Assembly: GCA_964035545.1 (NCBI GenBank)
Contig: OZ037767.1
Location: forward strand, 1,375,680 to 1,439,679
Origin: Bugula neritina
Lineage: Eukaryota > Animalia > Bryozoa
Reading direction: 5' to 3'
DNA: 64,000 nt
Below, piece by piece: positions 29,724 through 57,565 of this stretch; the first letter of the stretch is position 1, and the number at the start of each line of letters is the position of its first letter. The notes under the pieces were generated by a model that ran no database searches, was not told the DNA's origin, and saw only the letters and a list, made by a program, of their open reading frames with translations. The translations under genes and the position numbers were made by a program.

Positions 29724-32700
29724 ATGTCTGGAGAAATGGGAAAATGTGCTAAACTCTCAGACTATTTTTCTGAAGACCAAATTAAAGGGATGGGCAGATA
29801 TGAAAGAACACGGAATGAAAATCTCATTCGGAATTACAACTATATGAAGTCTATAGGTGAACCTTGTACTGCTTTACCGAGTAATAAAATATTTCCATTG
29901 CTTGTTATAGAAAATATAGTTGCTAAAATAAATTCTGTTATTTCCTATATTGAGTTGCATACAAGTATTCATAACTTTTATAAGTTTTAAAAATGTCACC
30001 AGTTTCTTTCATATTTAGGACTGGGTACTATCAAACCTCCTTTTCCAAAGAAGAAAGAAATTCTAAAGCAGCCTCTGGCTGAGAGAAAGTCATGGGGTTC
30101 CTTGGAGAAAGATGGAGAGGCGGCTGCTAACACCCGTCCAGTTCGAGGTATGTTGTTTGGTCCATTTTTATCTGGAATTTATGTGATTTTAATTAAAGCT
30201 ATGTGGATGTAGCCAGTTATTTTCTAGGTCAAAGTATTCAGATTTTTGCACATATTTAACACACACGCGCGCACACACAGTTGCGTGTTGTAAACTTCTG
30301 TTCTTTATACATAACACCTTCAAAATATAATATGTAGTACTTTCAGTATCCAAAAACTATATTAGATGTGTTTTTTTGAACCTCTCTTCAATTGCAGTGA
30401 TAATTAAGCTCTTTATATAAGTTTATTTTATTAAAAGCAATATTCAAACAACACAATTTTTTCATGAATTAATAGCTGAATATTTTTTCTGTTTCAATTT
30501 AAGATTATGAGAGATTCTTAATAAATGTACGCTATCTGTGTTCCTATTGTTTACTCAACTAATGATTGCTCTGAACAAATCTTTCACCTGCAGAAAGGAA
30601 GACGGTAAAAAGATTTCAGCCTCCTGCACCAAAGTTGCAAGTGGAAAAAACCACCAAGTGTGATGCTAAGGTATAGCAATTCTATTATATTCTGTTTACC
30701 CAATATACTTCAAATTTTACTTTCAGATTCACTTCAAACTATTTGTCTTTTGATCCACACTTTATGCTTCTATATATATTAAAAAGCAATAATGATATAT
30801 CACAAAAGTGCTTTATATTGTATAGTCAGGCAGGTTTGTAATACACCTGCAGTTTGACGAGTCATTTAACAGTCAAATGATGGACTCTGAATGAATTAAC
30901 CTACTGATGTACACATCAGTTCTGATTCAAGTTTGTCTAAAATATTAAATTGTTTGCCCAATTTAGAAAAAAATATTACAGACTCAACTAATTTTCAACA
31001 TTCATAAGTTTAAAGGATCTTATTACAGAATGCAGATGCTGACACTAATGGGCAATTAGACAGCAGTTTTGAATCTGAAGATTTGGAGTGGTCAACGCAG
31101 AGTTCCTCTTCTGAAGACTCTGATGATGACTACAATGAGGAGAATATTCCAGTAAAGAAGAGAAGAATTCTGAAACCAAAAGGTAGTATGAGAGAATAAC
31201 TATACGTAGATAATCTCATGAATACGATATAAGCTATTTATTTTACTAGCTTGTAGAGTTGTGTAAATAATCATATATAGGAATTCACAAGGCAAAAGTT
31301 CATATTGCTTTTGTATTAGGATCAGGAGTTGTAGATTTATAATTTGTAAAAGAATGTTCAAACATTTGAAGTCTTCAATTATGAAGGAAAACTATCTATT
31401 TAACTCTTCTAAAGATTTGAATTGAGTGTTTTTGCTACTCAGCTGCTTCTATTGATACATCAAATTAACTTTCAGCCCATTCATCACGAGTTCTCTTCCG
31501 ACCTCTCAACAACACTAAAATGATAATATACAAAAAGAAGATACTACCCAGGAGGAAGTGTGTGTCGTCAGCCTTTAACTACAAAGAGCAGGATGTGGAG
31601 GATGACGACTCCTACATCTGTATGTATCACAGCACACTTTTCTTGTTATGGTGACGGAGTGTATTATAATGAGAGGAATAGATGGTATACAGTAACACCA
31701 GCTGTGGTCTCAGCTGAAGCACTGAGTGTTTTGGTTGAAGATAAACGCTGCATCTCTCACTTCTCTGTTATACTGATTTATATTTTAGATTGTGAAGAAT
31801 GTCAGCTGGAATATGTGGGTTGTTGTCCACTTCACACTTTAATACCCATACTTGACACTCCAGTATGTATTTCAGTTCTGTTATATGCTTTCTGGTATTA
31901 TTAAACTATTGCAATGTATGATTATGATATATTATGTACTTGGGACATGTGTATATATATGTTCTCGATATATGATTTCTCTGGTGAATACTTGGAATTG
32001 TGTGAATTTTTTTCTCAAATGTTAATTTATTTTTCTGTTATTTATTTCTTGAAATTATTATTGGCTGATTTTTGCATTGACACTTGGTGATAGCATTCAG
32101 CTAGTCATTTATAAGCATCAGTTATACAAAGGCTCTCATGATGTTTACAATATGGCTCTCAGGTGCCACTAGGGGAAGAAAACCGAGCTGAGAAAACTCT
32201 CCCAGCTGGTCTTTCCTTGTCAGCTTCAAAAATAAAGAACGCCGGACGAGGTGTTTGGACAGACCGAGTGATTCCAAAGTTCACCAGGTTTGGGCCGTAT
32301 GAGGGGGTGGAGAAGGTGTGCAGTGACGTGACCAAGGATGAGGTGTCGGGATACGGCTGGCTGGTCAGTGACTCACATCTCTGTGTTATATAACACTGAC
32401 TCCATGAAACCCTTACACTTAGCTGAGCTGTTTCTTAGTTTCAAGTTTGCACAACTCAAGTTTTGCTTGTTAAACCGATAAGATTCGAAAGCACATATTT
32501 TATATAGTTTAATGTTAAGGAATGCGGAAAGATTTAAGTATCCATTTTCTCCTTTCAGATTAACTACAAATTAGCTGGCTGTTCACAATGTCTTATGCAG
32601 TAATGTTTCTATGCAAATGACAGTTCTTTTGCAAACAGCTTTCTCTAAGCAGCCCAAACCATTCTCATTTTTTACAGCTGCCTAGACTAATACTTATTGC

Positions 32701-34331
32701 ACATGCTCAGTGCTAACTAATATAATTTGTTTCCTTAACTGTTACAGGTTGTGAGGGGCTCAGGCTCTTACTATATAGATGGTGAAGATACTCGAACTTC
32801 AAATTGGCTGCGTTACATCAACTGTGCCCGTACCAAGGTGGAACAGAACTTGGAGGCATATCAGTATCAGGGGAAGACTTACTATAAAACTCTCAGAGAG
32901 ATAACCATAGGTGAGAGTATAGTATAATTATACAGTATTAATACACAGTCAGTTCTCTGTAGTTCACACACTTAGCTGGTGGTTCTGTTGTTGCAGGACA
33001 TGAACTGCTGGTTTGGTACGGAGATGATTACGCCGCTGACCTTGGCATTGATAAAGAGAACTATGCTACAGCTGCCTGTCCTCTAATTGGTTAGTTTTTG
33101 CTGCTCAAGTTGTCATATGTTATCTTGTAGCAATATGATAGTGTTGTATTAAAGTGAGATGTCAAAGTTTCCCCATCAGGTTTAGAGCAAGTTTTATAAT
33201 TTCAGTGAATGTTGTGTTGAAAGTTAGACAACTTTATGGGAACCCATGTTCACAGACTTTATTTTCTCCAGCAGCTCCCCAACAGCCAAACAGTTCGGCA
33301 GCAAACGCCTCAGTGACTTTCCATTACTGTGATGAGTGTAAAGCTCAGTTTGTGAACAAATCCTCTCTACTCAGGCATAAAAAGTGGCACAAGCAGAGCT
33401 CTTCTAGTAAGTCTACTAGCTTAAAGTTTCCTTTTGTCAAAGTTATGTTTAAAATTTTATTTCATTCCTAATAGCTGTATTTCTTGTTCATTTGCTGAAA
33501 GTTAATGCAACATGACTAATTAATTTAACTCCTAAAATATATCTTCCGAATGATATGCAAATAATATTCATCTTCTACCTCGTACTTAGACAAAAATTCT
33601 ATCCTGCATGGTTGTTGATTAATGTGCAGCCTTAGCAGTAAAGTATTACATGTTATTATGAATCCTCATAATAATTTGTTGCAGCTAAAGAAAATAGTTC
33701 TTCTCCAGTTGAACTAGAAGCTCCCAGAACTATAAAATGTGGAGACTGTGACTTTAGATGCAGTTATCCTGACGAACTCAAGAAACATGTGAAATGTCAC
33801 CGGAAAGGAAGTGAGAAGAAATACAAATGTACTCTGTGTGAGTATAGAAGTGCGTACAGCAGTCACCTACAGACACACTTCAGGACACACAGTGGAGAGA
33901 AGCCATACAAGTGTACTCAGTGTGAGTATAGATGTGCACAGAGCAGTGCTCTACAGACACACCTCAGAACACACAGTGGAGAGAAGCCATACAAGTGTAC
34001 TCTGTGTGAATATAGAAGTGCGTACAGCAGTCACCTACAGACACACTTCAGGACACACAGTGGAGAGAAGCCATACAAGTGTACTCAGTGTGAGTATAGA
34101 TGTGCACAGAGCAGTGCTCTACAGACACACCTCAGAACACACAGTGGAGAGAAGCCATACAAGTGTACTCTGTGTGAGTATAGATGTGCACAGGGCAGTC
34201 ACCTACAGACACACCTCAGGACACACAGTGGAGAGAAGCCATACAAGTGTACTCTGTGTGAGTATAGATGTGCATACAGCAGTACCCTACAGGATCACCT
34301 CAGGACACAACATGCTGGTGAGAAACCTTAG
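29724..34331 (+). CDS. PRDM9: Full-length PRDM9/PRDM7-type histone methyltransferase, ~649 aa; coding exons c1 29724-29856, c2 30019-30147, c3 30594-30670, c4 31029-31182, c5 31476-31619, c6 31789-31862, c7 32163-32363, c8 32748-32910, c9 32997-33089, c10 33272-33406, c11 33685-34331
   Basis: aKRAB (LSDYFSEDQIKGMGRYERTRNENLIRNYNYMKSIGL); SSXRD-like (LPRRK...YKEQDVEDDDSYIY); Zn knuckle (CEEC...CPLH); PR/SET with the three catalytic-site tyrosines (FGPYEG, TYYKT, LLVWYG) plus NWLRYINCAR; post-SET finger; one spacer finger; six tandem 84-bp fingers in one exon. Exons sum to 1950 nt, in frame. Confidence 0.93.
33822..34328 (+). repeat. 84-bp C2H2 zinc-finger minisatellite x6 (PRDM9 array)
   Basis: Near-identical units; recognition helices YSSHLQT, QSSALQT, YSSHLQT, QSSALQT, QGSHLQT, YSSTLQD. 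Confidence 0.95.
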
Positions 34332-36915: not shown

Positions 36916-37355
36916 TTAGCTTGTGGTCTCATCTGAGTCGTACTGTTTGCGGAAACAATCTTCAACAGGAAAGAAATCCCAGCATCTGTTATTATACATT
37001 TCCCAGACGTATGTTTCCTGGCCTGTGTACTCCGTATCCGGTTTTTTTTATCAAATGCATCAAAAAGAACCTAAAAAGTTACCAATAAAATGTTAAAAAT
37101 TCCATAAATGCATATGGAGTGCTAACTATAGCAATAACATTCCCACAACGTAGAAAACAGTGGTGTGTGGTAGCAAAATGTTTACCATAACTAAACCAGA
37201 TTACGCAATAATAATAATTAAAATAAATCATCTTATTCCAATACCGAAAGAGTAAAATAAAGATATGGAAAAAAGTAGTTTCTTACATGTAGTTTGCAAA
37301 GTTGTGTTCTTTCGTAACATGCTTTTGAAACCCGTGTGGATGTTCGTCAAAATAG
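36916..37355 (-). pseudogene. Duplicated ryanodine receptor 3' fragment 1 (last exon, last intron, part of penultimate exon)
   Basis: Near-identical to 58360-58800; truncated at TCGTCAAAATAG; +1 frameshift in the T run at ~37042-37049; 3' UTR similarity extends back to ~36415. Confidence 0.9.
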
Positions 37356-37489
37356 GCAATCCTACTTCCTTTATTAGTAACCAAACAAAAACAGAATTAC
37401 AAGTAGCAAAATAGTAGTACACAGTCTAAAAACACAGAAGTAGCTCTCCAACTCTCTGGGCAGGCTTGGTCACCTCGTCACATACTGAG

Positions 37490-37695
37490 ACACGCCCATT
37501 TTCAGGCTGGCCAATAAGCCTCAGCTTATGAATAACACAGTGAACCAGCCAGCCAATCGCTGTAAATCATTAACAGTCGAACCAATTAGCACTATGGTAT
37601 ACTTCTGTTTCATGAATGCTGTCTAGTCAACAGTTAGTGTTTGGTGAATAAAGTCCTGTGACAACTAGGGAGAACTATTTTAACTACAAGTGAGT
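37490..37695 (+). promoter_or_regulatory. Putative promoter and first non-coding exon of SET-less copy A
   Basis: CACGCCC box at 37491, CCAAT at 37511, 37553 and 37582, donor-like AA|GTGAGT at 37690; the block is conserved before the other ATG-bearing copies. Confidence 0.5.
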
Positions 37696-38514
37696 CTTAA
37701 AAAATAAATATAATATACGTTAACACTTAGATTCTTAGAATTTTCTCAGTAACCCTTTGTTTCCTATATATTATTTTATCATTACAATAACAGTCTGGCA
37801 TTCAACTGTTTTTATAGTAGTAACCAACACTAGCACTTAGGTGCAATGGCGAAGAAATTTCAACAGCTAAAGTTTTCATGTAAATAAATTTGATAAACTA
37901 CTATGTTGTTTTAACATGATGATGTTAGCATAAGAATAATTATCAATAATTTTATGTTATATATAGAATTATACATAGCTGCAGCAGTGTGTTGATATTT
38001 TTATCAACTATCTAAATTGAAAATAATATTCATATTGTAATGGCTCATAGATAGAAAAAAAGGGAGACTCGTCTTTTCCCCCTTTTGATAAACACTAACA
38101 CATAAGACTATGCATTCTAGTTAGTCGTAGCTTTCCCTTCTAGTCGGCCAACGTGACTAGGTCATACTAAACTGTCCCCTCCAATCAGGTTGGATATCAA
38201 CACGTGATCAAGATATACTTAAAAACAGTGTTTCCCGCGATGACATGGTTGAGACACTCTATTCTGATCTTCTTTTATCACTGATGTAGACTTTTCTCTT
38301 TATTGTATATTATTCTTCAATACATATTATTCTCATGCTTCTAATAATATATCTTGGAGTTGATTGCATAACATTCAGGGGATGAACTGATTAGAAACAT
38401 ACACAAGTACCCACAATAACATAGTTCGAGAACTATAACATTATAAAAGTAAGCCCATCCTATCTTTTCAGATTTTAAGTTTACATTTTCATAGCATATG
38501 TTAATAGGCTAACA

Positions 38515-41500
38515 ATGTCTGGAGAAATAGGAAGATGTGTTGATCTCTCGGACTATTTTTCTGAAGACCAAATTAAAGCGATGGGCAGATATGAAAAAAC
38601 ACGAAATGAAAATCTCATTAGGAATTACAACTATATGAAGTCTATAGGTAAATCTAAATATTCTGCATTGCTTGTTATAAAACATATATAATTGTTAATA
38701 TGCATTATGTTAATTCCTGCTACCCTAACAGAACAAATCGGAGATGGGCGAGAAAGTATACATCATGCTATTTCTTACATTGAGTTGCCTGCAAGCATTT
38801 ATAACTCAACAGATATCATTGATTTGACATTGCGGTAAGATACAATGTCAGTTGATTTTTTAAAAATGTCACTTGCTGAATTTATATTTAGGACTGGATA
38901 CTATTAAACCTCCATTTCCAAAGAAAGAAGTTCTAAAGCAACCTTTAGCTGAGAGAAACTCATGTGGTTCCATAGAGAAAGGTGGAGAGGCGGCTGTTAA
39001 CACCAAGTGTGATACTAAGGTATAGCAATTCTATTATTTTGTTTACTCAATATACTTCAAATTTTACTTTCTAACTATTTGGCTTTTTGATCCACACTTC
39101 ATGCTTCTATATATAATTCAAAAGCCATGTAGTGTCCTTGATGATAAATAGTAAAATTTCATGAACTTGGTTTTATTTAGTTTGCTTACTGACACTCTGC
39201 TGCCAATTTGTTCACAGTTGTTATAATTTCTCATTTAGCAATTTAGCATTTACTGACATTGCCACACTGCCTTTGTGTTTTCACAGATTTCAACAGTAAA
39301 TCGCCCATCTTTATTGTATGTTTTAGCACTTGTTTGTCACTTTTTTTATCTTCAGGACCATTTTAGTATCACTAGGTGCATTGCAAGTTTTATTCTGCAC
39401 TGACTGCACTCAAAAATTATGACTAAGAAATGAGTGCATTAGCTTTACCATAAGACACAAACAGATAATCACGGGCTTTCCATGTACCGATCTCAGATCG
39501 ATCTCAGATTGATCTCAGATTGATCTCAGATTGATCTCAGATCGATCTCAGATCGATCTCAGATCGATCTCAGATCGATCTCGCTGAGATCGATCTGAAA
39601 AATGTGCTCAGATCGATCGTTTTTCCATGAGAGTGTCAGATCGATCTAGCGAAGTTGCCTCCTCTTAAGTGAAGGATACTTTAAAAGTATAATTTGTTCA
39701 CCTATTTGGGTGATTAAAGCTACTACTGTTGAAAACAAGATGGTCGTAGTCTAAAATTTAATCCCAACTATAAACTGTACGCAGCAAAGCTTTCAGTGTA
39801 TGGTAATTTGGCCAATTTAAAATAATTAATTTTAATTTTTCAGCTTGACAGCTTATATAAAATTAATGGCTGTCTTGCAGATTATTAATAAACTTACCGG
39901 GCCGTTGGGCTTAAAATTACAAAGAAAATAGCTAATGAAACTAAATTTTAATAGTCATTTAAATTCAATTTAAATTATCCCGTTTTTTTTACCTTCTGCT
40001 GCATATAATTGAGTTTTCTTAATCATAGTACTGAAAGTATAAGTTTTGGCATCTGAAAAGGTGGCTATCATAATTATTTAATACTTTGCTTAGTAATTAT
40101 CCATAAGTTATCATTTTTATTAGCAGACAACATTGTAGCGAGCAGTCTTTTTCTACTTCTCAGATCGATCTGGCGTCTTTCCATGGTCTTATTGACATGA
40201 GATCGATCTGAGTTCGAGCTCCACAGACTGACCAGCTCAGATCGATCTGAGATCGGTCCATGGAAAGCCGGTGAATATAAATATACGCACTTATAGCCAG
40301 GACATTATGGTATAAGAACCCTAAAGGTTCCATTCTCATCTACTTTCCATTCTCATCTACTCTCACATAATATCAGCTGTTATTTTCACAAAACGCACAG
40401 TATAAAATATTTCTTTCCTTATAACTTTGCTAATCTATATTATTACTTTGAATATTTAAATAATTATAAAACAAGCAATTTATCAAATTATCTTATGTAC
40501 TTATCTGTGTTTAATTTGCTCTTATTCCGTCATATTTTAATCTTGTAAAAAATTTGTAGTTTCACAGGGTAAACAGTGTGAATAAATAAACTACCTACAC
40601 TAAAACACACACTAAAACTTTTATATCAACTTAGGAGGGCAGTTACAAGCTATATTAAAATAATTTCGGAAGATCTGATATGCACCATAAATATCACTTA
40701 ATCAATTGACTCTAATGGATTCTTGCATATATGAACGTATCAGTTCTGCTTAACCTTTGCTTCAAATGCTAAATTCTCTGCTTAACTTTGAAAACCTTTA
40801 CTGGAATAATTTTCCACATAATTCATAAAATCACAGTTACAAGTTTGTCATTACAGAATGCAGATGCTGACACTAATGGGCAATTAGACAGCAGTTCTGA
40901 CTCAGAAGCTCTGGACTGGTTAGAGAACTGTTACTCTTCTGAAGACTCTGATGATGACTACAATGAGGAGAATATTCCAGTAAAGAAGAGAAGAATTCTG
41001 AAACCAAAAGGTAGTATGAGAGAATAAACTATATATATTGCTATACTTGTGAATACTATATGAGCTATTTAGTTTACTTGTAGAGTTGTGTAAATAGTCT
41101 TATATAGGAATTCACAAGGCAAAGATCCCATGCATATACACAGTTGGCTAATGTTAAGCTACGTTTATACCTCTGCTGAAAAAAATACTGAGTTTTAGTT
41201 AATAACGCTTGTCCAGGTACCCCTTTATAGTCAAACTGAAATCAATGAAATCATATTTATGCCGGAACTCACTTTCTAAAAGTAAACTCTGACTCGCCTA
41301 ATGGCTATTTGATGCCCTTTATAAACGTCGTGAATTAGTGAAGTTGTCAACCTAAAAGTAATATTTGTGAAGGCGTAGGCGATATAATTATTACCATTCA
41401 AGTATGTCATCTTATAATCGCCAAAGTCATAACTAAATAACGATGTTTACAAGGAGTTGTTACTCCTTTTGAGTATTATTCTGAAATCGGCCGATTAAGT

Positions 41501-43952: not shown

Positions 43953-44391
43953 TTAGCTTGTGGTCTCATCTGAGTCGTACTGTTTGCGGAAACAATCTTC
44001 AACAGGAAAGAAATCCCAGCATCTGTTATTATACATTTCCCAGACGTATGTTTCCTGGCCTGTGTACTCCGTATCCGGTTTTTTTATCAAATGCATCAAA
44101 AAGAACCTAAAAAGTTACCAATAAAATGTTAAAAATTCCATAAATGCATATGGAGTGCTAACTATAGCAATAACATTCCCACAACGTAGAAAACAGTGGT
44201 GTGTGGTAGCAAAATGTTTACCATAACTAAACCAGATTACGCAATAATAATAATTAAAATAAATCATCTTATTCCAATACTGAAAGAGTAAAATAAGGAT
44301 ATGAAAAAAAGTAGTTTCTTACATGTAGTTTGCAAAGTTGTGTTCTTTCATAACAAGCTTTTGAAACCCCTGTGGATACTCGTCAAAATAG
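43953..44391 (-). pseudogene. Duplicated ryanodine receptor 3' fragment 2
   Basis: Same extent and breakpoint as fragment 1; shares the G>E change ([10 protein letters not shown]) with fragment 1. Confidence 0.9.
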
Positions 44392-45507: not shown

Positions 45508-48500
45508 ATGTCTGGAGAAATAGGAAAATGTGCTACACTCTCGGACTATTTTTCTGAAGACCAAATTAAAGCGATGGGCAGATGTGAAAAAACACGAAAT
45601 GAAAATCTCATTCGGAATTACAACTATATGAAGTCTATAGGTAAATCTAAATATTCTGCATTGCTTGTTATAAAACATATATAATTGTTAATATGCATTA
45701 TGTTATTTCCTGCTACCCTAACGGAACAAATCGGAGATGGGTGAGAAAGTATACATCATGCTATTTCTTACATTGAGTTGTCTGCAAGCATTTATAACTC
45801 AACAGATATCATTAATTCGACATTGAGGTAAGATACAATGTCAGTTGATCTTTTAAAAATGTCACTTGCTGAATTTATATTTAGGACTGGATACTATTAA
45901 ACCTCCATTTCCAAAGAAAGAAGTTCTAAAGCAACCTTTAGCTGAGAGAAACTCATGTGGTTCCATAGAGAAAGGTGGAGAGGCAGCTGTTAACACCACC
46001 AAGTGTGATACTAAGGTATAGCAATTCTATTATTTTGTTTACTCAATATACTTCAAATTTTACTTTCTAACTATTTGGCTTTTTGATCCACACTTCATGC
46101 TTCTATATATTCAAAAGATATGTAGTGTCCTTGATGATGTAATGTTTGTATCTGTTTACTAAAGCTATGTTTATATTATCCCACAACTTATACCTGCTAG
46201 CAGCCTTATGAAATGTTATAGCTATACAATTATGCTGTCAAAGTAATTATGTTGTGGTTTTCAAAGTGCTATGTAACTGTTGTGACATACTGTTTGTTTA
46301 TCAAGTGGGAGTTAGCTTTGAGATTGGAGACAATAAAGTGTAGTGACAGTGAGAAAATTGGTAGTAATTTATTGCAGTAATTATCTATACAACACAACAG
46401 ATGATAGATAGTAAAATTTCATAAACTTGGCTTTATTTAGTTTGCTTACTAACACTCTGCTGCCAATTTGTTCATAGCTGTTATAATTTCTCATTTAGCA
46501 ATTTAGCATTTACTGACATTGCCACACTGTGTTTGTGTTTTCACAGATTTCAACAGTAAATCGCCCATCTTTATTGTATGTTTTAGCACTTGTTTGTCAC
46601 TTTTTTACCTTCAGGACCTTTTTAGTATCACTAGATGCATTGCAAGTTTTATTCTGCACTGACTGCACTCAAAAATCATGACTAAGAAATGAGTGCATTA
46701 GCTTTACCATAAGACATGAACAGATAATATACCACTTAGCCAGGACATTATAGTATAAGAACCCTCAAGGTTCCATTCTCATCTACTCTCACATAATATC
46801 AGCTGTTATTTTCACAAAACGCACAGTATAAAATATTTCTTTCCTTATAACTTTGCTAATCTATACTATTACTTTGAATATTTTAATAATTATAAAACAA
46901 GCAATTTATCAAATTATCTTATGTACTTTTCTGTGTTTAATTTGCTCTTATTCCGTCATATTTTAATCTTGTAAAAAAGTTGTAGTTTCACAGTGTAAAC
47001 AGTGTGAATAAATAAACTACCTACACTAAAACACACACTAAAACTTTTATATCAACTTAGGAGGGCAGTTACAAGCTATATTAAAATAATTTCGGAAGAT
47101 CTGATATGCACCATAAATATCACTTAATCAATTGACTCTAATGGATTCTTGCATATATAAACTTATCAGTTCTGCTTAACTTTTGCTTCAAATGCTAAAT
47201 TCTTTGCTTAACTTTGAAAAACCTTTACTGGAATAATTTTCGACGTGATTCATAAAATCACAGTTACAAGTTTGTCATTACAGAATGCAGATGCTGACAC
47301 TAATGGGCAATTAGACAGCAGTTTTGAATCTGAAGCTCTGGATTGGTTAGAGAAATGTTACTCTTCTGATGACTCTGGTGATGACTACAATGAGGAGAAT
47401 ATTCCAGCAAAGAAGAGAATTCTGAAACCAAAAGGTAGTATGAAAGAATAACTATACATTGCTATACTTGTGAATACGATGTGTGCTGTTTAGTTTACTT
47501 GTAGAATTGTGTAAATAGCCTTATATAGGAATTCACAAGGCAAAGATCCCATGCATATACACAGTTGGCTAATGTTGAGTTACGTTTATACCTCTGCTGA
47601 AAAAAATACTGAGTTTTAGTTAATAGCGCTTGTCCAGGTACCCTTTCATAGTCAAACTGAAATCATTGAAATCATATTTATGCCGAAACTTACTTTCTAA
47701 AAGTAAACTCTGACTCGCCTAATGGCCATTTGATGCCCTCTATAAACGTCGTGAATTAGTGAAATTGCCAGCATAAAAGTGATATTTGTGAAGGCGTAGG
47801 CGATATAATTATTACCATATAAGTATGTCATCTTATAATCGCCAAAGTCATAACTAAATAACGATGTTTACAAGGAGTTGTTACTCCTTCTGAGTATTAT
47901 TCTGAAATCGGCCGATTAAGTTATCACAGTACAAAAATTTTTACTAGTGGCTTTTACAATGCAACACAACTCGAAGAACTTTCCACCCAGCCAAATTGAA
48001 TTTCGAACTGAAAATCGTGAAAGTCTAAACGCAACTAAAACTTAATTGATGTTATGTTCTTACCATATTTGACAGTTTATTAGCCTACACGACTGTGTGA
48101 AAGCTGCAATTTTTGTTTATTTGCTGAAAGTTAATACAACTTGACTAATTATTTAGAGTTTGTTAATCTGATAATACATCTTCCAAGTGATATGTGAATA
48201 TGTATTTTCTAGCACATTTTGGGACAAAAAAACTATCCTGGTTATTACATACAAGTGTACTCAGTGTGAATATAGAAGTGCTTGTTATAAAATATTGCTT
48301 GTTATAAAACGTATATAATTTTTAATATGCATTATGTTATTTCCTGCTACCCTAACAGAACAAATTGGAGATGGATGAGAAAGTATACATCATGCTATTT
48401 CTTACATTGAGTTGCCTGCAAGCATTTATAACTCAACAGATATCATTAATTCGACATTGAGGTAAGATACAATGTCAGTTGATTTTTTAAAAATGTCACT

Positions 48501-51500
48501 TGCTGAATTTATATTTAGGACTGGATACTATTAAACCTCCATTTCCAAAGAAAGAAGTTTTAAAGCAACCTTTAGCTGAGAGAAACTCATGTGGTTCCAT
48601 AGAGAAAGGTGGAGAGGCGGCTGTTAACACCACCAAGTGTGATACTAAGGTATAGCAATTATATTATTTTGTTTACTCAATATACTTCAAATTTTACTTT
48701 CTAACTATTTGGCTCTTTGATCCACACTTCATGCTTCTATATATTCAAAAAATATGTAGTGTCCTTGATGATGTAATGTTTGTATCTGTTTACTAAAGCT
48801 ATGTTTATATTATCCCACAACTTATACCTGCTAGTAGCCTTATATTATGAAATGTTATAGCTATACAATTATGCTGTCAAAGTAATTATGTTGTGGTTTT
48901 CAAAGTGCTATGTAACTGTTGTGACATACTGTTTGTTTATCAAGTGGGAGTTAGCTTTGAGATTTGAGACAAAAAAGTGTAGTGACAGTGAGAAAGTTGG
49001 TAGTAATTTATTGCAGTAATTATCTATACAACACAACAGATGATAGATAGTAAAATTTCATAAACTTGGCTTTATTTAGTTTGCTTACTGACACTCTGCT
49101 GCCAATTTGTTCACAGCTGTTATAATTTCTCATTTAGCAATTTAGCATTTACTGACATTGCCACACTGTGTTTGTGTTTTCACAGATTTCAACAGTAAAT
49201 CGCCCATCTTTATTGTATGTTTTAGCACTTGTTTGTCACTTTTTTATCTTCAGGACCATTTTAGTATCACTAGGTGCATTGCAAGTTTTATTCTGCACTG
49301 ACTGCACTCAAAAATTATGACTAAGAAATGAGTGCATTAGCTTTACCATAAGACACAAACAGATAATATACCACTTAGCCAGGACATTATGGTATAAGAA
49401 CCCTCAAGGTTCCATTCTCATCTACTTTCCATTCTCATCTACTCTCACATAATATCAGCTGTTATTTTCACAAAACGCACAGTATAAAATATTTCTTTCC
49501 TTATAACTTTGCTAATCTATATTATTACTTTGAATATTTAAATAATTATAAAACAAGCAATTTATCAAATTATCTCATGTACTTTTCTGTGTTTAATTTG
49601 CTCTTATTCCGTCATATTTTAATCTTGTAAAACATTTGTAGTTTCACAGTGTAAACAGTGTGAATAAATAAACTACCTACACTAAAACACACACTAAAAT
49701 TTTGTATCAACTTAGGAGGGCAGTTACAAGCTATATTAAAATAATTTCGGAAGATCTAATATGCACCATAAATATCACTTAATCAATTGACTCTAATGGA
49801 TTCTTGCATATATAAACTTATCAGTTCTGCTTAACTTTTGCTTCAAATGCTAAATTCTTTGCTTAACTTTGAAAAACCTTTGCTCGAATAATTTTCGACG
49901 TGATTCATAAAATCACAGTTACAAGTTTTTCATTACAGAATGCAGATGCTGACACTAATGGGCAATTAGACAGCAGTTTTGAATCTGAAGCTCTGGATTG
50001 GTTAGAGAACTGTTACTCTTCTGAAGACTCTGATGATGACTACAATGAGGAGAATATTCCAGTAAAGAAGAGAATTCTGAAACCAAAAGGTAGTATGAGA
50101 GAATAACTATACATTGCTATACTTGTGAATACTATATGAGCTATTTAGTTTACTTGTAGAGTTGTGTAAATAGTCATATATAGGAATTCACAAGGCAAAG
50201 ATCCCATGCATATACACAGTTGGCTAATGTTGAGTTACGTTTATACCTCTGCTGAAAAAAATACTGAGTTTCAGTTAATAGCGCTTGTCCAGGTACCCCT
50301 TTATAGTCAAACTGAAATCGTTGAAATCATATTTATGCCGAAACTTACTTTCTAAAAATAAACTCTGACTCGCCTAATGGCCATTTGATGCCCTTTATAA
50401 ACGTCGTGAATTAGTGAAATTGCCAGCATAAAAGTAATATTTGTGAAGGCGTAGGCGATATAATTCTTACCATATAAGTATGTCATCTTATAATCGCCAA
50501 AGTCATAACTAAATAACAATGTTTACAAGGAGTTGTTACTCTTTTTGAGTATTATTCTGAAATCGGCCGATTAAGTTATCACAGTACAAAAATTTTTACT
50601 AGTGGCTTTTACAATGCAACACAACTCGAAGAACTTTCAACCCAGCCAAATTGAATTTCGAACTGAAAATCGTGAAAGTCTAAACGCAACTAAAACTTAA
50701 TTGATGTTATGTTCTTGCCATATTTGAGAGTTTATTAGCCTACACGACTGTGTGAAAGCTGCAATTTTTGTTTATTTGCTGAAAGTCAATACAACTTGAC
50801 TAATTATTTAGAGTTTGTTAATCTGATAATACATTTTCCAAGTGATATGTGAATATGTATTTTCTAGCACATTTTGGGACAAAAAAATTATCCTGGTTAT
50901 TACTTTGTGTTCAGCCTTTTCAGTAAAGTATTACATATTATTACATGAATCCTCATAATAATTTGTTGCAGCTGAAGAAAATAGTTCTTCCCCAGTTGAA
51001 CTAGAAGCTCCCAGAACTATAAAATGTGGAGACTGTGACTTTAGATGCGGTTATCCTGACGAACTCAAGAAACATATGAAATGTCACCGGAAAGGAAGTG
51101 AGAAGAAATACAAATGTACTCGGTGTGAGTATAGAAGTGCAGACCGCAGTAACTTACAGAGACACCTCAGGACACACAGTTTGGAGAAGCCATACAAGTG
51201 TACTCAGTGCGAGTATAGATGTACAACCAGTAGTACCCTACAGAGACACCTCAGGACACACAGTGGGGAGAAGCCATACAAATGTACTCTGTGTGAATAT
51301 GGAAGTGCATACAGCAGTCACCTGCAGAGGCACCTCAGGACACACAGTGGGGAGAAGCCATACAAGTGTACTCTGTGTGAGTATAAAAGTGCACAGAGCA
51401 GTCACCTACAGGCACACCTCAGAACACACAGTGGAGAGAAGCCATACAAGTGTACTCTGTGTGAATATAGAAGTTCATACAGCAGTGACCTACAGAAACA

Positions 51501-51534
51501 CCTCAGAAGACGTCATCCTGGTGAGAAACCTTAG
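45508..51534 (+). CDS. PRDM9-derived SET-less KRAB-zinc finger gene, chimeric copy B/C (~419 aa if all exons are used; 1+5 fingers); exons 45508-45640, 45885-46015, 47284-47434, 48519-48649, 49939-50089, 50972-51534
   Basis: Copy B lacks its ZF exon (only a 34-bp scar at 48248-48281 remains) and copy C lacks its KRAB exon. The remaining exons are phase-compatible and sum to 1260 nt without stops. Confidence 0.7.
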
Positions 51535-52316
51535 TTGAGTGATAACCTCTCACCTCTATAACATTGTGACATGTACTGTATAGTATAGTGCATTGCAGCA
51601 CTAGATGTTTATATCTCATCAGTTGCAATTGTATAATTATTGGCTATGAGGTACACATTGTACAGGCTTTATATATCTAGTTTTATGCATTCATCTTATA
51701 ATTTTGTGATATACTCTAATATGTGATTAACATGCATGTATTGTTATACCTTTACGCTAGTAGATAATGGGCTAGTACACCGTTATATATCATAATATAT
51801 TATAATATAATATATGTGACAAGAGATACTTGGACAGAATTTGTTGTTAACTGTTTTCCTTAGAATCTGGTAAATAGCTAGGCAGCTTCTGATTGGTGTG
51901 TGGAATAATGATCATAAGGTGAAGTAGAGAGGGCCACTGTGTAGTTTATTGAATATTAACAAAAGAGGGTAGAACTGAGGGTGAACTGCTCAATATTTTA
52001 GTCAAAAATATATTATTCATTTACGCTATTTATTATGGGTATAATTTCATACAGTCGGTTCACGATATACATTACATATGCTAAACATAATCATACAAAA
52101 TCATTATGAAATATTCAATGCAGTTTGAACTAAGTATTAAATACTAAACAATGCTGCAAAATGTAATCATTAAATATGGGAGACTTGGCTAATTCAATCA
52201 ATATAAAACACTACAAAAAATATTACCTAATGCATTGCCATGATCAACATGGCACTGTTTAAATTTGTTAACCTATGTTGACTACCATAGCCTAAATCTC
52301 TTAAACCAAGTTAGGT

Positions 52317-52759
52317 TTAGCTTGTGGTCTCATCTAAGTCTTACTGTTTCCGGAAACAATCGCCAACAGGAAAGAAATCCCAGCATCTGTTATTATACAT
52401 TTCCCAAACGTATGTTTCCTGGCCTGTGTACTCCGTATCCAGTTCATTTATCAAATGCATCAAAAAGAACCTAAAAAGTTACCAATAAAATGTTAAAAAT
52501 TCCATAAATATATGCATATGGAGTGCTAACTATAGCAATAACATTCCCACAACGTAGAAAACAGTGGTGTGTGGTAGCAAAATGTTTACCATAACTAAAC
52601 CAGATTACGCAATAATAATAATTAAAATAAATCATCTTATTCCAATACTGAAAGAGTAAAATAAGGATATGAAAAAAAGTAGTTTCTTACATGTAGTTTG
52701 CAAAGTTGTGTTCTTTCATAATATGCTTTTGAAACCCCTGTGGATGTTCGTCAAAATAG
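52317..52759 (-). pseudogene. Duplicated ryanodine receptor 3' fragment 3
   Basis: Same breakpoint; premature stop (KQY to KQ*) at ~52342; keeps PVGDC like the intact gene. Confidence 0.9.
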
Positions 52760-52899
52760 GCAAACCTACTTCCTTTATTAGTAACCAAACAAAAACAGAA
52801 TTACAAGTAGCAAAATAGTAGTACACAGTCTAAAAACACAACAGTAGCTAACTGCTCTCCAACTCTCTGGGCTGGCTTGTCACCTCGTCATATACTGAG

Positions 52900-53115
52900 A
52901 CACGCCCATTTTCAGGCTGGCCAATAAGCCTCAGCTTATGAATAACACAGTGGACCAGCCAGCCAATCGCTGTAATTCATTAGCAGTCGAACCAATTAGC
53001 ACTATGGTCTACTTCTGTTTTATGAATGCTGTCTAGTCAACAGTTACAGTGAGTTAGTGTTTGATGAATAAAGTCCTGTGACAACTAGGGAGAACTATTT
53101 TAACTACAAGTAAGT
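52900..53115 (+). promoter_or_regulatory. Putative promoter and first non-coding exon of copy D
   Basis: CACGCCC at 52901, CCAAT at 52921, 52963 and 52992, donor-like AA|GTAAGT at 53110. Confidence 0.5.
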
Positions 53116-53879
53116 CTTAAAAAATAAATATAATATACGTTAACACTTAGATTCTTAGAGATTTCTCAGTAACCCTCACTTAGGTGCAATGGCAGAGAAA
53201 TTTCAACAGCTCAAGTTTTCATTTAAATAAATTTGATAAACTACTATGTTGTTTTAACATGATGATGTTAGCATAAGAATCATTATAAATACTTTCATGT
53301 TATATATAGAATTATATATAGCTGCAGCAGTTTGTTGATATTTTTACCAACTATCTAAATTGAAAGTATTGTAATGGCTCATAGATAGAAAAAAGGGGAC
53401 TCGTCTTTTCCCCCTTTTGATGGACACTAACACATTGACGATGCATTCTAGTTAGTCATATAGCGTTTCCCTTCTAGTCGGCCAACGTGACTAGATCATA
53501 CTAAACTGTCCCCTCCAATCAGGTTGGATATCAACACATGATCAAGATATACATAAAAACATTGTTTCCGCGAGGACATGATTGAGACCGGCTAGGCTAG
53601 CAGTAAAACACTAATTGATATTCTGTTCTTCTTTTATCACTGATGTAGACTTTTCTCTTTATTGTATATTATTCTTCAATACATATTATTCCCACGCTTC
53701 TAATAATATATCTTGGAGTTGATTGCATAACATCCTGGGGATGTACTAATTAGAAACATACACAAGTACCCACAATAAGTATAACATAGTTGGAAAACTA
53801 TAACATTATAAAAGTAATCCCTTCCTATCTTTTCAGATTTTAGGTTTACATTCTCATAGCATATGTTAATAGGCTAACA

Positions 53880-56800
53880 ATGTCTGGAGAAATAAGAAAA
53901 TGTGCTACACTCTCGGACTATTTTTCTGAAGATCAAATTGAAGCGATGGGCAGATGTGAAAAAACAAGAAAAGAAAATCTCATTCGGAATTACAACTATA
54001 TGAAGTCTATAGGTAAATCTAAATATTCTGCATTGCTTGTTATAAAACATATATAATTGTTAATATGCATTATGTTATTTCCTGCTACCCTAACAGAACA
54101 AATTGGAGATGGATGAGAAAGTATACATCATGCTATTTCTTACATTGAGCTGCATGCAAGCATTTATAACTCAACATTGATTTAACATTGCGGTAAGATA
54201 CAATGTCAGTTGATTTTTTAAAAATGTCACTTGCTGAATTTATATTTAGGGCTGGATACTATTAAACCTCCATTTACAAAGAAAGAAGTTCTAAAGCAAC
54301 CTTTAGCTGAGAGAAACTCATGTGGTTCCATAGAGAAAGGTGGAGAGGCGGCTGTTAACACCACCAAGTGTGATACTAAGGTATAGCAATTCTATTCTTT
54401 TGTTTACTCAATATACCTCAAATTTTACTTTCCAACTATTTGGCTTTTTGATCCACACTTCATGCTTCTATATATTCAAAAGCTATGTAGTGTCCTTGAT
54501 AATAAATAGTAAAATTTCATAAACTTGGTTTTATTTAGTTTGCTTACTGACACTCTGCTGCCAATTTGTTCACAGCTGTTATAATTTCTCATTTAGCAAT
54601 TTAGCATATACTGACATTGCCACACTGTGTTTGTGTTTTCACAGATTTCAACAGTGAATCGCCCATCTTTATTGTATGTTTTAGCACTTGTTTGTCACTT
54701 TTTTATCTTCAGGACCATTTTAGTATCACTAGGTGCATTGCAAGTTTTATTCTGCACTGACTGCACTCAAAAGTCATGATTAAGAAATGAGTGCATTAGC
54801 TTTACCATAAGACACAAACAGATAATATACCACTTAGCCAGGACATTATAGTATAAGAACCCTCAAGGTTCCATTCTCATCTACTCTCACATAATATCAG
54901 TTATTTTCACAAAACGCACAGTATAAAATATTTCTTTTCCTATAACTTTGCTAATCTATACTATTACTTTGAATATTTTAATAATTATAAAACAAGCAAT
55001 TTATCAAATTATCTTATGTACTTTTCTGTGTTTAATTTGCTCTTATTCTGTCATATTTTAATCTTCTTGTAAAAAAAATTGTAGAACTTCACTGTGTAAA
55101 CGGTGTGAATAAATAGACTGCCTACACTAAAACACACAGCCGTATGAAACTTTCATATCAACTTAGGAGGGCAGCTACAATAATTTCGAAAGATCTGATA
55201 TGCACCATGCATAACTATCACTTAATCGATGGACTCTAATGGATTCTTGCATATATAAACGTATCAGTTCTGCTTAACTTTTGCTTCAAATGCTAAATTC
55301 TTTGCCTAACTTTGAAAAACCTCTACTCAAATGATTTTCCACATGATTCATAAAAGCACAGTTACAAGTTTGTCATTACAGAATGCAGATGCTGACACTA
55401 ATGGGAAATTAGACAGCAGTTTTGAATCTGAAGCTCTGGATTGGTTAGAGAACTGTTACTCTTCTGGAGACTCTGATGATGAATACAACGAGGAGAATAT
55501 TCCAGTAAATAAGAGAATTCTGAAACCAAAAGGTAGTATGAGAGAATAACTATACATTGCTATACTTGTGAATACTATATGAGCTATTTAGTTTACTTGT
55601 AGAGTTGTGTAAATAGTCATATATAGGAATTCACAAGGCAAAGATCCCATGCATATACACAGTTGGCTAATGTTAAGTTACGTTTATACCTCTGCTGAAA
55701 AAAATACTGAGTTTCAGTTAATAGCGCTTGTCCAGGTACCCTTTTATAGTCAAACTGAAATCGTTGAAATCATATTTATGCCGAAACTTACTTTCTAAAA
55801 GTAAACTCTGACTCGCCTAATGGCCATTTGATGCCCTTTATAGACGTCGTGAATTAGTGAAATTGTCAGCATAAAAGTGATATTTGTGAAGGCGTAGGCG
55901 ATATAATTATTACCATATAAGTATGTCATCTTATAATCGCCAAAGTCATAACTAAATAACGATGTTTACAAGGAGTTGTTACTCCTTTTGAGTATTATTC
56001 TGAAATCGGCCGATTAAGTTATCACAGTACAAAAATTTTTACTAGTGGCTTTTACAATGCAACGCAACTCGAAGAACTTTCAACCCAGCCAAATTGAATT
56101 TTGAACTGAAAATCGTGAAAGTCTAAACGCAACTAAAACTTAATTGATGTTATGTTCTTGCCATATTTGACAGTTTATTAGCCTACACGACTGTGTGAAA
56201 GCTGCAATTTTTGTTTATTTGCTAAAAGTTAATACAACTAGACTAATTATTTCGAGTTTGTTAATCTGATAATACATCTTCCAAGTGATATGTGAATATG
56301 TATTTTCTAGCACATTTTGGGACAAAAAAATTATCCTGGTTATTACTTTGTGTTCAGCCTTTTCAGTAAAGTATTACATATTATTACATGAATCCTCATA
56401 ATAATTTGTTGCAGCTGAAGAAAATAGTTCTTCCCCAGTTGAACTAGAAGCTCCCAGAACTATAAAATGTGGAGACTGTGACTTTAGATGCAGTTATCCT
56501 GACGAACTCAAGAAACATATGAAATGTCACCGGAAAGGAAGTGAGAAGAAATACAAGTGTACTCTGTGTGAGTATAGAAGTGCAGACCGCCGTAACCTAC
56601 AGACACACCTCAGGACACACAGTGGAGAGAAGCCATACAAGTGTACTCTGTGTGAGTATAGAAGTGCATACAGTGGTGCTCTACAGAGACACCTCAGGAC
56701 ACACAGTGGAGAGAAGCCATACAAGTGTACTCTGTGTGAGTATAGATGTACAACCAGTAGTACCCTACAGAACCACCTCGGGACACACAGTGGAGAGAAG

Positions 56801-57565
56801 CCATACAAGTGTACTCTGTGTGAGTATAGAAGTGCATACAGCAGTGCTCTACAGAGACACCTCAGGACACACAGTGGGAAGAAGCCGTACAAGTGTACTC
56901 TGTGTGAGTATAGATGTACAACCAATGGTAACCTACAGACACACCTCAGGACACACAGTGGAGAGAAGCCATACAAGTGTACTCTGTGTGAGTATAGATG
57001 TGCACAGAGCAGTCACCTACAAACACACCTCAGGACACACAGTGGAGAGAAGCCATACAAGTGTACTCTGTGTGAGTATAGAAGTGCATACAGTGGTGCT
57101 CTACAGAGACACCTCAGGACACACAGTGGAGAGAAGCCATACAAGTGTACTCTGTGTGAGTATAGATGTACAACCAGTAGTACCCTACAGAACCACCTCA
57201 GGACACACAGTGGAGAGAAACCATACAAGTGTACTCTGTGTGAGTATAGAAGTGCACAGAGCAGTCACCTACAGAGACACCTCAGGAAACACAGTGGAGA
57301 GAAGCCATACAAGTGTACTCTGTGTGAGTATAGATGTACAACCAATGGTAACCTACAGACACACCTCAGAACACACAGTGGAGAGAAGCCATACAAGTGT
57401 ACTCTGTGTGAGTATAGATGTACAACCAGTAGTACCCTACAGGACCACCTCAGGACACACAGTGGAGAAAAACCATACAAGTGTACTCAGTGTGAGTATA
57501 GATGTGCAGTCAACAGTAACCTACAGAGACACCTCAGGACACAACATGCTGGTGAGAAACCTTAG
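53880..57565 (+). CDS. PRDM9-derived SET-less KRAB-zinc finger gene, copy D (~521 aa; 1+12 fingers); exons 53880-54012, 54250-54380, 55382-55532, 56415-57565
   Basis: Same four-exon structure as copy A; 1566 nt in frame, no stops, intact GT-AG sites. Confidence 0.83.
56552..57562 (+). repeat. 84-bp zinc-finger minisatellite x12 with ~5-finger higher-order period
   Basis: Helices DRRNLQT, YSGALQR, TSSTLQN, YSSALQR, TNGNLQT, QSSHLQT, YSGALQR, TSSTLQN, QSSHLQR, TNGNLQT, TSSTLQD, VNSNLQR; helices 2, 3 and 5 recur as 7, 8 and 10. Confidence 0.95.

Follow-up and report, generated by a model that had tools for sequence, protein, structure and literature searches.

Downstream of an intact PRDM9 gene in a bugulid bryozoan lie three further zinc-finger reading frames, which raises the question of what these genes are, how they arose and whether they are maintained. 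They were found in a window of 64,000 nucleotides, the whole stretch of DNA analysed here, whose host had been taken for a probable invertebrate from its letters alone. The three genes are almost certainly real, lineage-specific paralogues of PRDM9, as judged from their origin and architecture, and are a case of the known birth and death of PRDM9 genes, in a variant form that lacks SET.

The full-length PRDM9 gene (29724-34331, plus strand) consists of 11 exons with AG acceptors and GT donors throughout, and its ORF of 649 amino acids has no internal stop. An alternative acceptor of exon 5 (31491 instead of 31476) yields a protein of 644 amino acids and is backed by the B. neritina orthologue. 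Exon 1 (29724-29856) encodes the start codon and a helix pair resembling the ancestral KRAB-A box, exon 2 (30019-30147) the region past KRAB-A with a KPPFP motif, and exon 4 (31029-31182), which ends in phase 1, an acidic/basic linker; exon 3 (30594-30670) is nearly all gone from the downstream copies. The block of exons 5 to 10 (31476-33406) encodes an SSXRD-like region, a zinc knuckle, the PR/SET domain and the post-SET finger. It is made up of exon 5 (31476 or 31491-31619), exon 6 (31789-31862), exon 7 (32163-32363), exon 8 (32748-32910), exon 9 (32997-33089) and exon 10 (33272-33406); exons 7 to 9 match Pfam PF21549, exon 10 matches C2H2, and the best solved relative is PRDM9 4c1q. The finger exon (33685-34331) starts in phase 1 and encodes one atypical finger and six C2H2 fingers, followed by a stop codon.

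The paralogues A, B and C follow in tandem 3' of PRDM9 on the same strand. Exon-by-exon tblastn searches of the window located copies of exon 1 at 38515, 45508 and 53880, of exon 2 at 38894, 45887, 48521 and 54252, of exon 4 at 40851, 47278, 49933 and 55376, and of the finger exon at 42675, 50962 and 56405; a second copy of exons 5 to 10 was not found in the window. These matches bear out the claim of the sequence-only reading that the copies stem from the PRDM9 gene beside them. A profile of exon 1 (A1) gave four matches in the 216-Mb genome, all of them inside the window. The in-frame deletion of the exons for SSXRD, zinc knuckle, PR/SET and post-SET finger, which had been proposed together with the junctions 41010>42685, 50089>50972 and 55532>56415, was reproduced to the nucleotide, as were the open spliced models of 297 (A), 419 (B) and 521 (C) amino acids with four, five and 12 fingers, each array being preceded by one atypical finger. 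Since the end of exon 4 and the start of the finger exon are both in phase 1, the deletion product remains in frame. The earlier statement that no copy carries a stop or frameshift also holds: all ORFs are intact, none of the 22 splice dinucleotides is lost, and each of the three copies retains its start codon. A second in-frame deletion has fused PRDM9 exon 2 to the end of exon 3 in the exon 2 of the copies.

Copy A comprises exon 1 (38515-38647), the fused exon 2 (38892-39019), the linker exon 4 (40857-41010) and the finger exon (42685-43163), and copy C comprises exon 1 (53880-54012), the fused exon 2 (54250-54380), exon 4 (55382-55532) and a finger exon (56415-57565) that includes a recent five-finger block duplication. 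In copy B, exon 1 (45508-45640) is followed by two exon 2/exon 4 pairs, the first at 45885-47434 (exon 2, 45885-46015; exon 4, 47284-47434) and the second at 48519-50089 (exon 2, 48519-48649; exon 4, 49939-50089), and by the finger exon (50972-51534). The two pairs result from an internal 2.6-kb duplication (45660-48248 versus 48294-50903, 96.7% identical). The second pair is phase-compatible and could be included in frame; the model of 419 amino acids requires this inclusion, and the protein would otherwise have 325 amino acids. At the deletion junction, within the exon 4-to-finger-exon intron, copy C carries a high-copy dispersed repeat of about 400 bp (55736-56135), with equivalents at about 50293-50690 in copy B and 41217-41637 in copy A; the repeat has a depth of about 20000 and at least 40 genomic copies. 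The corresponding intron of copy A also contains an additional stretch of about 750-800 bp.

Each unit was duplicated together with a piece of the convergent ryanodine-receptor (RyR) gene. Fragments of the last RyR exon are found on the minus strand at 36919-37078 (frameshifted), 43956-44114 (open) and 52320-52478 (in-frame stop), which agrees with the earlier observation that two of the three are disrupted, and the last coding exon of the real RyR gene lies on the same strand at 58363-58521. The end of the duplication unit falls at about 58800, within the penultimate exon of the real gene. The duplicated span very probably began some 90 bp 5' of the PRDM9 start codon, extended through the finger exon and reached into the 3' end of RyR.

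A tandem array of this kind could also arise as an assembly artefact in which uncollapsed haplotypes were joined; this is extremely improbable. The copies differ from each other by 3-5%, which is similar to the roughly 4% between two B. neritina haplotigs, contigs of run X1 on exons 1 and 2 of copy C carry copy-B letters, and one C-exact contig of that run has half the single-copy depth. However, three units and, in addition, a partial duplication inside one of them are more than two haplotypes can yield, the window contains no N, and the units differ in finger number, in the additional intron stretch of A and in the 2.6-kb duplication of B. An independent assembly of another species shows the same order of PRDM9, RyR fragment and next copy, and depth added up across copy C at a likeness of 96% comes to about two to three times the single-copy value, which is weak evidence in the same direction.

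This other species is B. neritina, whose noncoding DNA is about 12% diverged from that of the window's bugulid. Its contig L017, which is collinear with the window at 34.3-38.6 kb, holds the intact PRDM9, the RyR fragment and the next copy, and contig L016 holds a dispersed, intact SET-less gene of 329 amino acids; the survey of a relative suggested earlier thus recovered both the order and a separate gene. The dispersed gene has the same repeat of about 400 bp in its exon 4-to-finger-exon intron and, unlike A, B and C, has kept exon 3. In a tree of exon 4, it groups with A, B and C against both PRDM9s with 100% support. Exons 1 and 2 cluster by species instead, and the sequences indicate that gene conversion occurs between neighbouring genes. 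The paralogues of both species all have the same sequence upstream and lack the same 12 nt, the two PRDM9s share a different upstream sequence, and the derived residues LDWLENC are common to the SET-less genes of both species. Because the deletion, the intron repeat, LDWLENC and the upstream sequence are found in both species, the SET-less lineage is, on this comparison, older than their split, and only the triplication is young. The earlier proposal of a recent origin therefore fails for the deletion and stands for the triplication.

Whether the copies are under selection was addressed at the level of substitutions and indels. It is possible, though rather unlikely, that they are non-functional by-products of birth and death, i.e., young partial duplicates heading to decay, whose ORFs are open as a result of the recent triplication, gene conversion between neighbours and fewer indels in exons than in AT-rich introns. 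Other animals commonly carry truncated PRDM9 copies (bioRxiv 10.64898/2026.09.07.749791), and in B. neritina the tandem copy has a 1-nt deletion that shifts the frame in exon 1, and haplotig L001 lacks exons 1 to 3. The three copies of the window give a pN/pS of 0.60, not significantly below 1 (p = 0.14), and exon 1 evolves at a near-neutral rate (nine nonsynonymous versus three synonymous changes); the linker has a pN/pS of 0.55-0.82 between species. Conserved head residues have also been replaced: Cys has taken the place of Tyr26, a residue conserved in homologues of other taxa, in copies B and C as well as in those of B. neritina, and in B. neritina a likewise conserved Asp-Gln is Cys-Glu. 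The evident conversion in exons 1 and 2 could keep ORFs open without selection; however, PRDM9 differs from the copies by 11-17% and so has not overwritten them recently. Between species, the SET-less genes have a pN/pS of 0.56-0.74, compared with 0.29 for PRDM9, and the lowest value is below 1 (p about 0.03).

The indels argue against decay as well. Noncoding DNA of A, B and C has accumulated 4-8 small indels per kb and pair, about 65% of which are not multiples of three, and no frameshift is seen in the roughly 0.9 kb of shared coding sequence, where about 4.7 would be expected at a neutral rate that was taken from AT-rich introns and may overstate the exon rate. Both coding indels among A, B and C are 3 nt long. 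Between species, indels that are not multiples of three amount to 6.7 per kb in noncoding DNA and are absent from coding sequence; every coding indel is in frame (3, 3, 12 and 54 nt). The SET-less form has stayed open in two species, with no frameshifts against about five to six expected, and the co-duplicated RyR pieces did degrade. Taken from these sequence patterns, selection on the copies is relaxed but probably not absent.

The sequence-only reading had called the head a KRAB domain and regarded the cluster as an independent, recent origin of a KZFP-like family. The label did not hold up: Pfam KRAB has no match in the exons, in the joined database proteins P0010 and P0012, or genome-wide. 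An AF2 model of the head of the B. neritina orthologue resembles the N-termini of chordate PRDM7/9, SSX and KRAB proteins, and in an Atlas shape search the bryozoan head matched an SSX cluster (TM 0.54) and also a KRAB-annotated cluster. Judged by these models, the head would at best be of the ancestral PRDM9/SSX KRAB type. The finger arrays differ between copies as claimed, mainly at DNA-contact positions: variability is highest at unit positions 12, 15 and 18, corresponding to helix positions -1, +3 and +6, and contact residues hold 0.27-0.58 of array diversity versus 0.14 under uniform variation.

A true KZFP-like repressor system, with a corepressor-recruiting head and arrays that track transposons as in tetrapod KRAB clusters, would fit the KRAB-like N-terminus, the C2H2 array in one 3' exon, the tandem cluster, the contact-residue diversity and the weak structural neighbours of the head, which besides the KRAB-annotated cluster include the KRAB of ZNF93 (7z36_D, Z 3.0). 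It is nevertheless improbable, since the Pfam searches were negative, the ancestral-type head lacks the MLE spacing, there are only three genes, the heads evolve near-neutrally and no transposon link was found. The ancestral KRAB type was reported to lack repressor activity (PMC8835667), and the KRAB of PRDM9 to bind CXXC1, not TRIM28 (PMC5688218). A TRIM28-type repressor role is less likely. Of the earlier proposal, the independence of the event, in a lophotrochozoan, stands; the recency of the deletion and the repressor role are unsupported.

In the history favoured here, PRDM9 was duplicated in tandem in an ancestor shared by two or more bugulid species. The duplicate was then shortened by about 2.2 kb in the stretch from exon 4 to the finger exon, and the dispersed repeat now lies at the junction. 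Its product would combine the ancestral-KRAB-like head, an acidic/basic, NLS-like linker and a C2H2 array, with neither SSXRD nor methyltransferase domain. In the window's species, most of exon 3 was presumably lost before the recent triplication, and in B. neritina one SET-less copy appears to have moved to another locus. At least some copies may be translated into non-catalytic, sequence-specific DNA binders. The seven sequencing runs found consist of DNA-like unitigs, in which splice joints are absent even in the RyR gene, a result that the decay reading would also accommodate. The copies would most likely act beside PRDM9 in the germ line because they have kept the PRDM9-type head and array, which in the mouse serve contacts with CXXC1 and other partners and multimerisation; PRDM9 forms multimers by way of the finger array (PMC6643046). 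Possible modes of action for the copies are binding or marking of sites of their own without methylating H3K4/K36, competition with PRDM9 and entry into PRDM9 multimers. The account as a whole, including this germ-line function, has about an even chance of being correct.

In vertebrates and cnidarians, truncated PRDM9 paralogues likewise arose by PRDM9 duplication and subsequent loss of whole-exon domains (Baker et al. 2017, PMC5519329; bioRxiv 10.64898/2026.09.07.749791), with birth-and-death turnover that leaves old truncated lineages beside young copies and with fast-changing finger arrays. The cnidarian survey defined homologues by SET and described only 5' and/or 3' truncations (SZ, XSZ, kXSZ, S; bioRxiv 10.64898/2026.09.07.749791), whereas the bryozoan loss of SSXRD and SET is internal and keeps head and finger array in frame. 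Among mammalian relatives, SSX is also PRDM9-derived and has an ancestral KRAB head without methyltransferase domain; however, it keeps SSXRD and lost the fingers, whereas the bryozoan copies did the reverse. Primate PRDM7 likewise arose by recent duplication of PRDM9 and differs from it in domain content, but keeps KRAB, SSXRD and SET with a truncated finger array, the opposite of the bryozoan copies. The coelacanth and tetrapod KRAB zinc-finger proteins share the N-terminal KRAB-type head, a C2H2 array encoded by one 3' exon, the tandem clustering and the concentration of variation at contact residues, and their proposed origin is a PRDM9-like gene minus SET, as seen here. In contrast to them, the bryozoan head is of the ancestral type that Pfam KRAB misses and does not allow a TRIM28-type partner to be deduced, there are three genes rather than hundreds, constraint is relaxed, and the event is independent. 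Surveys anchored on SET would overlook such internally deleted PRDM9 copies, which mimic the proposed birth of the vertebrate KRAB zinc-finger genes.

The window is eukaryotic DNA with a GC content of 33-40% and zero N, and its nucleotide identity to Bugula neritina proteins and contigs is 80-90%; by its sequence, the species is a bugulid distinct from the B. neritina of GCA_010799875.2. The PRDM9 gene occupies 29724-34331 on the plus strand and consists of 11 exons, all bounded by canonical AG/GT sites, which together form a 649-aa open frame. Two in-frame acceptors for exon 5, located at 31476 and 31491, are 15 nt apart, and the frame is 644 aa when exon 5 begins at 31491. A 1-nt difference in the B. 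neritina orthologue leaves only the downstream acceptor usable, so that exon 5 probably starts at 31491 and the shorter protein is probably the one made. The PR/SET profile of the PRDM family (Pfam PF21549) matches exons 7, 8 and 9 (E 1e-6, 1e-18 and 0.03, respectively), exon 10 encodes a single C2H2 finger according to Pfam, and the solved structures nearest to both large SET exons are those of mouse and human PRDM9 (4c1q, 6nm4, 4ijd), while PRDM14, PRDM11 and PRDM1 rank lower. The tyrosines in the aligned SET motifs FGPYEG, NWLRYINCAR and AYQY are kept, which we take to be the catalytic residues numbered Y276, Y341 and Y357. Exon 5 encodes a basic and then acidic stretch and is followed by the exon with the CxxC knuckle, which is the place expected for the SSXRD domain; Pfam gave no SSXRD match on the 47 aa of this exon at E<=1. 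In the last exon, an atypical finger comes first, and six fingers of 28 aa each come after it (zf-H2C2_2, E 5e-44). The orthologue of B. neritina, found on L017, a part of contig VXIV02000606.1, is intact and has an exon 7 identity of 100%, and pN/pS between the two orthologues over exons 5-10 (SSXRD-SET) is 0.11. The parent gene is a bona fide PRDM9 under constraint.

Three paralogues, copies A, B and C, follow PRDM9 in tandem. A tblastn search of the window with the individual PRDM9 exons detected, besides PRDM9 itself, exon 1 and the finger exon three times each and exons 2 and 4 four times each; no second copy of exons 5-10 was found, in agreement with their loss from the copies as claimed in the sequence-only reading. 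With the splice sites and phases of PRDM9, the spliced models of the copies stay open over 297, 419 and 521 aa and encode 4, 5 and 12 fingers, which exactly reproduces the junctions, lengths and differing arrays described in that reading; joined sequences of the window served only for such frame checks and for substitution counts, and its genes were searched exon by exon. The copies adjoin PRDM9 in collinear order, have 71-89% homology in exons as well as introns and use common splice sites and phases. Thus, they derive from PRDM9 by duplication. Each gene of this tandem cluster has its array in one 3' exon, joined to the N-terminal KRAB-like region (hereafter the head), and possesses no other catalytic domain. 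In every copy, exon 2 of PRDM9 has been fused in frame to the final codons of exon 3 to form a single exon, with a breakpoint between AACACC and ACCACC and a loss of about 25 residues. Copy B additionally contains an internal 2.6-kb duplication, 96.7% identical, with a second pair of exons 2 and 4, which could be included in frame because the end of exon 4 and the start of exon 2 are both in phase 1. In the 216-Mb assembly of the window's species, an exon 1 profile detected four places only, all of which are exon 1 of PRDM9 or of copies A, B and C. In a phmmer search of exon 1 against 1.84 billion proteins, the matches were five short ORFs, all of which end in KSIG and are probably first exons in other taxa; two contigs behind these ORFs are 1.3-1.5 kb long and too short for gene context.

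The duplication unit begins about 90 bp upstream of the ATG and ends at about 58800, within the penultimate exon of the convergent ryanodine-receptor (RyR) gene, whose last-exon fragments were thereby co-duplicated. One of the three fragments is frameshifted, one carries a stop and one is open, which bears out the earlier claim that two of three are disrupted while the frames of the copies are open. Homology of the copies to PRDM9 breaks off at 31296 and picks up again at 33473. The filler at this junction is 557 bp long in copies B and C, and about 400 bp of it is a dispersed repeat, which is located at 55600-56200 in copy C, at about 50293-50690 in copy B and at 41217-41637 in copy A. This repeat occurs at least 40 times in the genome, its unitig depth is about 20000, and it occupies the same intron in B. 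neritina; an inverted-repeat search revealed no terminal inverted repeats in it. Copy A has an additional stretch of about 750-800 bp in the intron between exon 4 and the finger exon. Elsewhere in the window, a long coding-phase minisatellite at 24273-26210 has more than one open frame on either strand, and tandem-repeat tracts with units that are 81-97% identical are present at 618-1245 and 6977-7377, the latter of which also matches repeats on the B. neritina contig L001.

A pyrimidine tract followed by CAG is found about 50 nt upstream of each ATG (at about 29670, 38465, 45458 and 53830). It is conserved in seven of seven copies from both species, and the roughly 40 nt that immediately precede the ATG hardly vary. 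Beyond about -90, the paralogues of the two species all have one upstream sequence and a 12-nt deletion in common, and the two PRDM9 genes have another sequence in common. Exon 1 probably starts at a splice acceptor and is preceded by an unseen 5' non-coding exon, and the acceptor-like CAG, taken with the upstream sequence specific to the paralogues, is suggestive of a separate promoter and 5' exon.

The age of the SET-less genes can be read from B. neritina. On L017, PRDM9 is followed by an RyR fragment and then by a further exon 1 and exon 2 (20073-20508), collinear with 34.3-38.6 kb of the window. The RyR fragment beside the B. neritina PRDM9 (L017 18466-18880) includes a piece matching the upstream RyR exon region at 60285-60654 of the window; this piece is missing from the window's fragments, and the duplicated RyR segment thus differs in extent between the species. 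A dispersed SET-less gene is located at 8475-11935 of L016, another B. neritina stretch, and has five fingers and a 329-aa open frame. In it, exons 1, 2, 3 and 4 lead directly to the finger exon through an intron that bears the same repeat, and an RyR fragment comes next; no copy of exons 5-10 was found in this gene, and its atypical leading finger has been lost through a 54-nt in-frame deletion. A haplotig (L001 3765-5306) is about 96% identical to this locus, lacks exons 1-3 through a difference of about 6.2 kb. The flanks of L016 match contigs C6 and C8 in the assembly of the window's species, so that this copy has moved, and orthology by position is ruled out. The survey of a related genome proposed in the sequence-only reading thus returned both the order of PRDM9, RyR fragment and next copy and a dispersed SET-less gene.

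Separate deletions in the two species could in principle account for SET-less genes in both; this is ruled out by the collinear junction and the common repeat. In a tree of the exon 4 region, a split with 100% support sets the two PRDM9 genes apart from the B. neritina gene and copies A, B and C, and all SET-less genes carry LDWLENC at a place where both PRDM9s have LEWS(T/K)QSS. Together with the common upstream sequence, this makes the SET-less lineage older than the species split. In B. neritina, PRDM9 and the SET-less gene both have a GC donor at exon 2 rather than GT. A tree of exons 1-2 groups by species, which points to gene conversion. Divergence between the species, taken over mostly noncoding DNA between the copies, is 0.116-0.126, and divergence among the three units of the window is 0.026-0.041; by sequence comparison, exon 3 was lost and the unit was triplicated after the split, in the window's lineage. 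The proposed recent origin therefore applies to the amplification, but not to the SET-less deletion, which is already present in B. neritina.

Whether the copies are kept by selection was addressed by substitutions and by indels. Among copies A, B and C, the non-finger codons show 20 nonsynonymous and 9 synonymous events (pN/pS 0.60, p = 0.14), with a ratio of 9:3 in exon 1 alone. Against the B. neritina SET-less gene, pN/pS is 0.56 for A or B (p about 0.03) and 0.74 for C (not significant), and the same codons of the PRDM9 orthologues give 0.29 (p < 1e-4). The check by exon pN/pS thus speaks for constraint between the species for A or B, but not among the three copies. In noncoding alignments among A, B and C, each pair differs by 4-8 small indels per kb, of which about 65% are not multiples of three; over the three-copy tree, these rates predict about 5.3 frameshifts per kb and about 4.7 in the roughly 0.9 kb of shared coding sequence. 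Zero frameshifts were found in this shared sequence, and both of its coding indels measure 3 nt. In the comparison of the two species, 6.7 indels per kb of noncoding DNA are not multiples of three versus none in coding sequence, where the indels are 12 and 54 nt long. Furthermore, about 5.7% of possible substitutions would make a stop, and none has done so. The absence of frameshifts and stops from the compared frames argues for selection on the open frame, although the expectation is built on rates taken from introns, and gene conversion could soften the argument. The genes could instead be decaying: a single nucleotide is missing at codon 11 in exon 1 of the tandem copy of B. neritina, possibly an error of the draft assembly, and one haplotig is truncated at its 5' end.

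The finger arrays vary where DNA is contacted. Entropy over 27 fingers is highest at unit positions 12, 15 and 18, corresponding to helix positions -1, +3 and +6, with hardly any variation in the framework. The four contact positions account for 0.30-0.35 of the diversity in PRDM9, 0.27-0.41 in A, 0.29-0.39 in B and 0.47-0.58 in C, compared to 0.14 expected under uniform variation. The array of copy C (56543-57558) contains a recent duplication of a five-finger block, visible as a 92% identical self-match at an offset of 420 nt, to which it partly owes its length; fingers 2 and 7 as well as 5 and 10 are identical, and fingers 3 and 8 are one residue apart. A run search over 47701-57700 yielded seven runs, none of them registered as RNA, and four runs aligned to 53801-59800 behave as DNA unitigs, without splice joints, RyR exons included. 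Over exons 1-2 of copy C (53880-54380), the contigs of the DNA run X1 have the letters of copy B at 53895, 53933, 53940, 53967, 54251 and 54276; among the contigs listed for these exons, none has C's own letters, and the depth of a C-exact contig at 55145-55291 is 57, about half that of single-copy sequence (114). This may reflect a copy-number or gene-conversion polymorphism, or an effect of filtering.

The description of the head as KRAB in the sense of a modern KRAB-A box did not hold. The Pfam profile PF01352 (KRAB) matched neither the exon 1 and exon 2 pieces of PRDM9, to which the copies' own exons are 80-87% identical, nor, in a six-frame genome scan, exon 1 of PRDM9 or of copies A, B and C, nor the database proteins P0010 and P0012 of B. 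neritina (exons 1 and 2 joined) or P0011. PDB sequence searches with the head were empty (phmmer and two profile searches), as were an Atlas feature search for KRAB and a Foldseek search against the PDB; VIA-align reached Z<=3.6 at best, with the KRAB domain of ZNF93 tied among unrelated helices. By the standard profile, the head is not a KRAB domain. An AF2 model of the N-terminus of B. neritina PRDM9 predicts two helices with a pLDDT of 84-91 over residues 10-50, and its Atlas shape neighbours include chordate clusters of four kinds, namely KRAB, PRDM7, PRDM9-like proteins with SET and SSXRD, and SSX (TM 0.43-0.54). These neighbours and the position within PRDM9 let the modelled head fit the ancestral KRAB of PMC8835667, which is reported there from protostomes, has a core one residue shorter and was found inactive for TRIM28 binding and repression; compared by eye, the head has the L-IR-NY spacing one residue shorter that is given there for the ancestral type. 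In agreement with this, the head of mouse PRDM9 binds CXXC1 and other partners and shows no TRIM28 binding or repression (PMC5688218).

Beyond the origin, architecture, age and open frames documented here, the copies are putatively translated. Their products would be DNA binders which keep the partner-binding head and the multimerising array of PRDM9 but are incapable of histone methylation; multimerisation of PRDM9 through its finger array is described in PMC6643046. Such proteins could compete with, partner with or redirect PRDM9. With rather less than even confidence, we suggest that bugulids possess a functional, independently born family of head-plus-array proteins, which arose by one in-frame deletion in PRDM9, has been kept since before the species split and is now expanding.

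To our knowledge, PRDM9 has been studied very little beyond vertebrates and cnidarians, and no paper linking it to bryozoans was found in the literature. In the locus described here, a lophotrochozoan PRDM9 is intact and under strong constraint. Truncated paralogues of PRDM9 are common; a cnidarian survey (bioRxiv 10.64898/2026.09.07.749791) requires SET and reports terminal truncations only. The copies resemble these paralogues in their origin by duplication but lack the SET domain, and since the survey is SET-anchored, the combination of head and fingers without the enzyme is a new variant, an architecture invisible to surveys of this kind. With KRAB zinc-finger genes, the copies have the same architecture, whereas the defining KRAB profile is absent from them. 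KRAB zinc-finger genes are thought to stem from a PRDM9-like gene. If functional, the bugulid family would repeat in nature the step by which the vertebrate KRAB zinc-finger genes are proposed to have arisen, and it might influence the sites of PRDM9 action without any catalysis of its own. Parent gene, deletion junction and daughter genes lie side by side, and with all parts preserved, the transition from PRDM9 to KRAB zinc-finger genes can be examined here with respect to the first-day role of such a protein, any activity of the head without SET and possible interference of the copies with hotspot choice. Even if the copies are silent, they represent a clear, dated case of PRDM9 birth and death in a new phylum.
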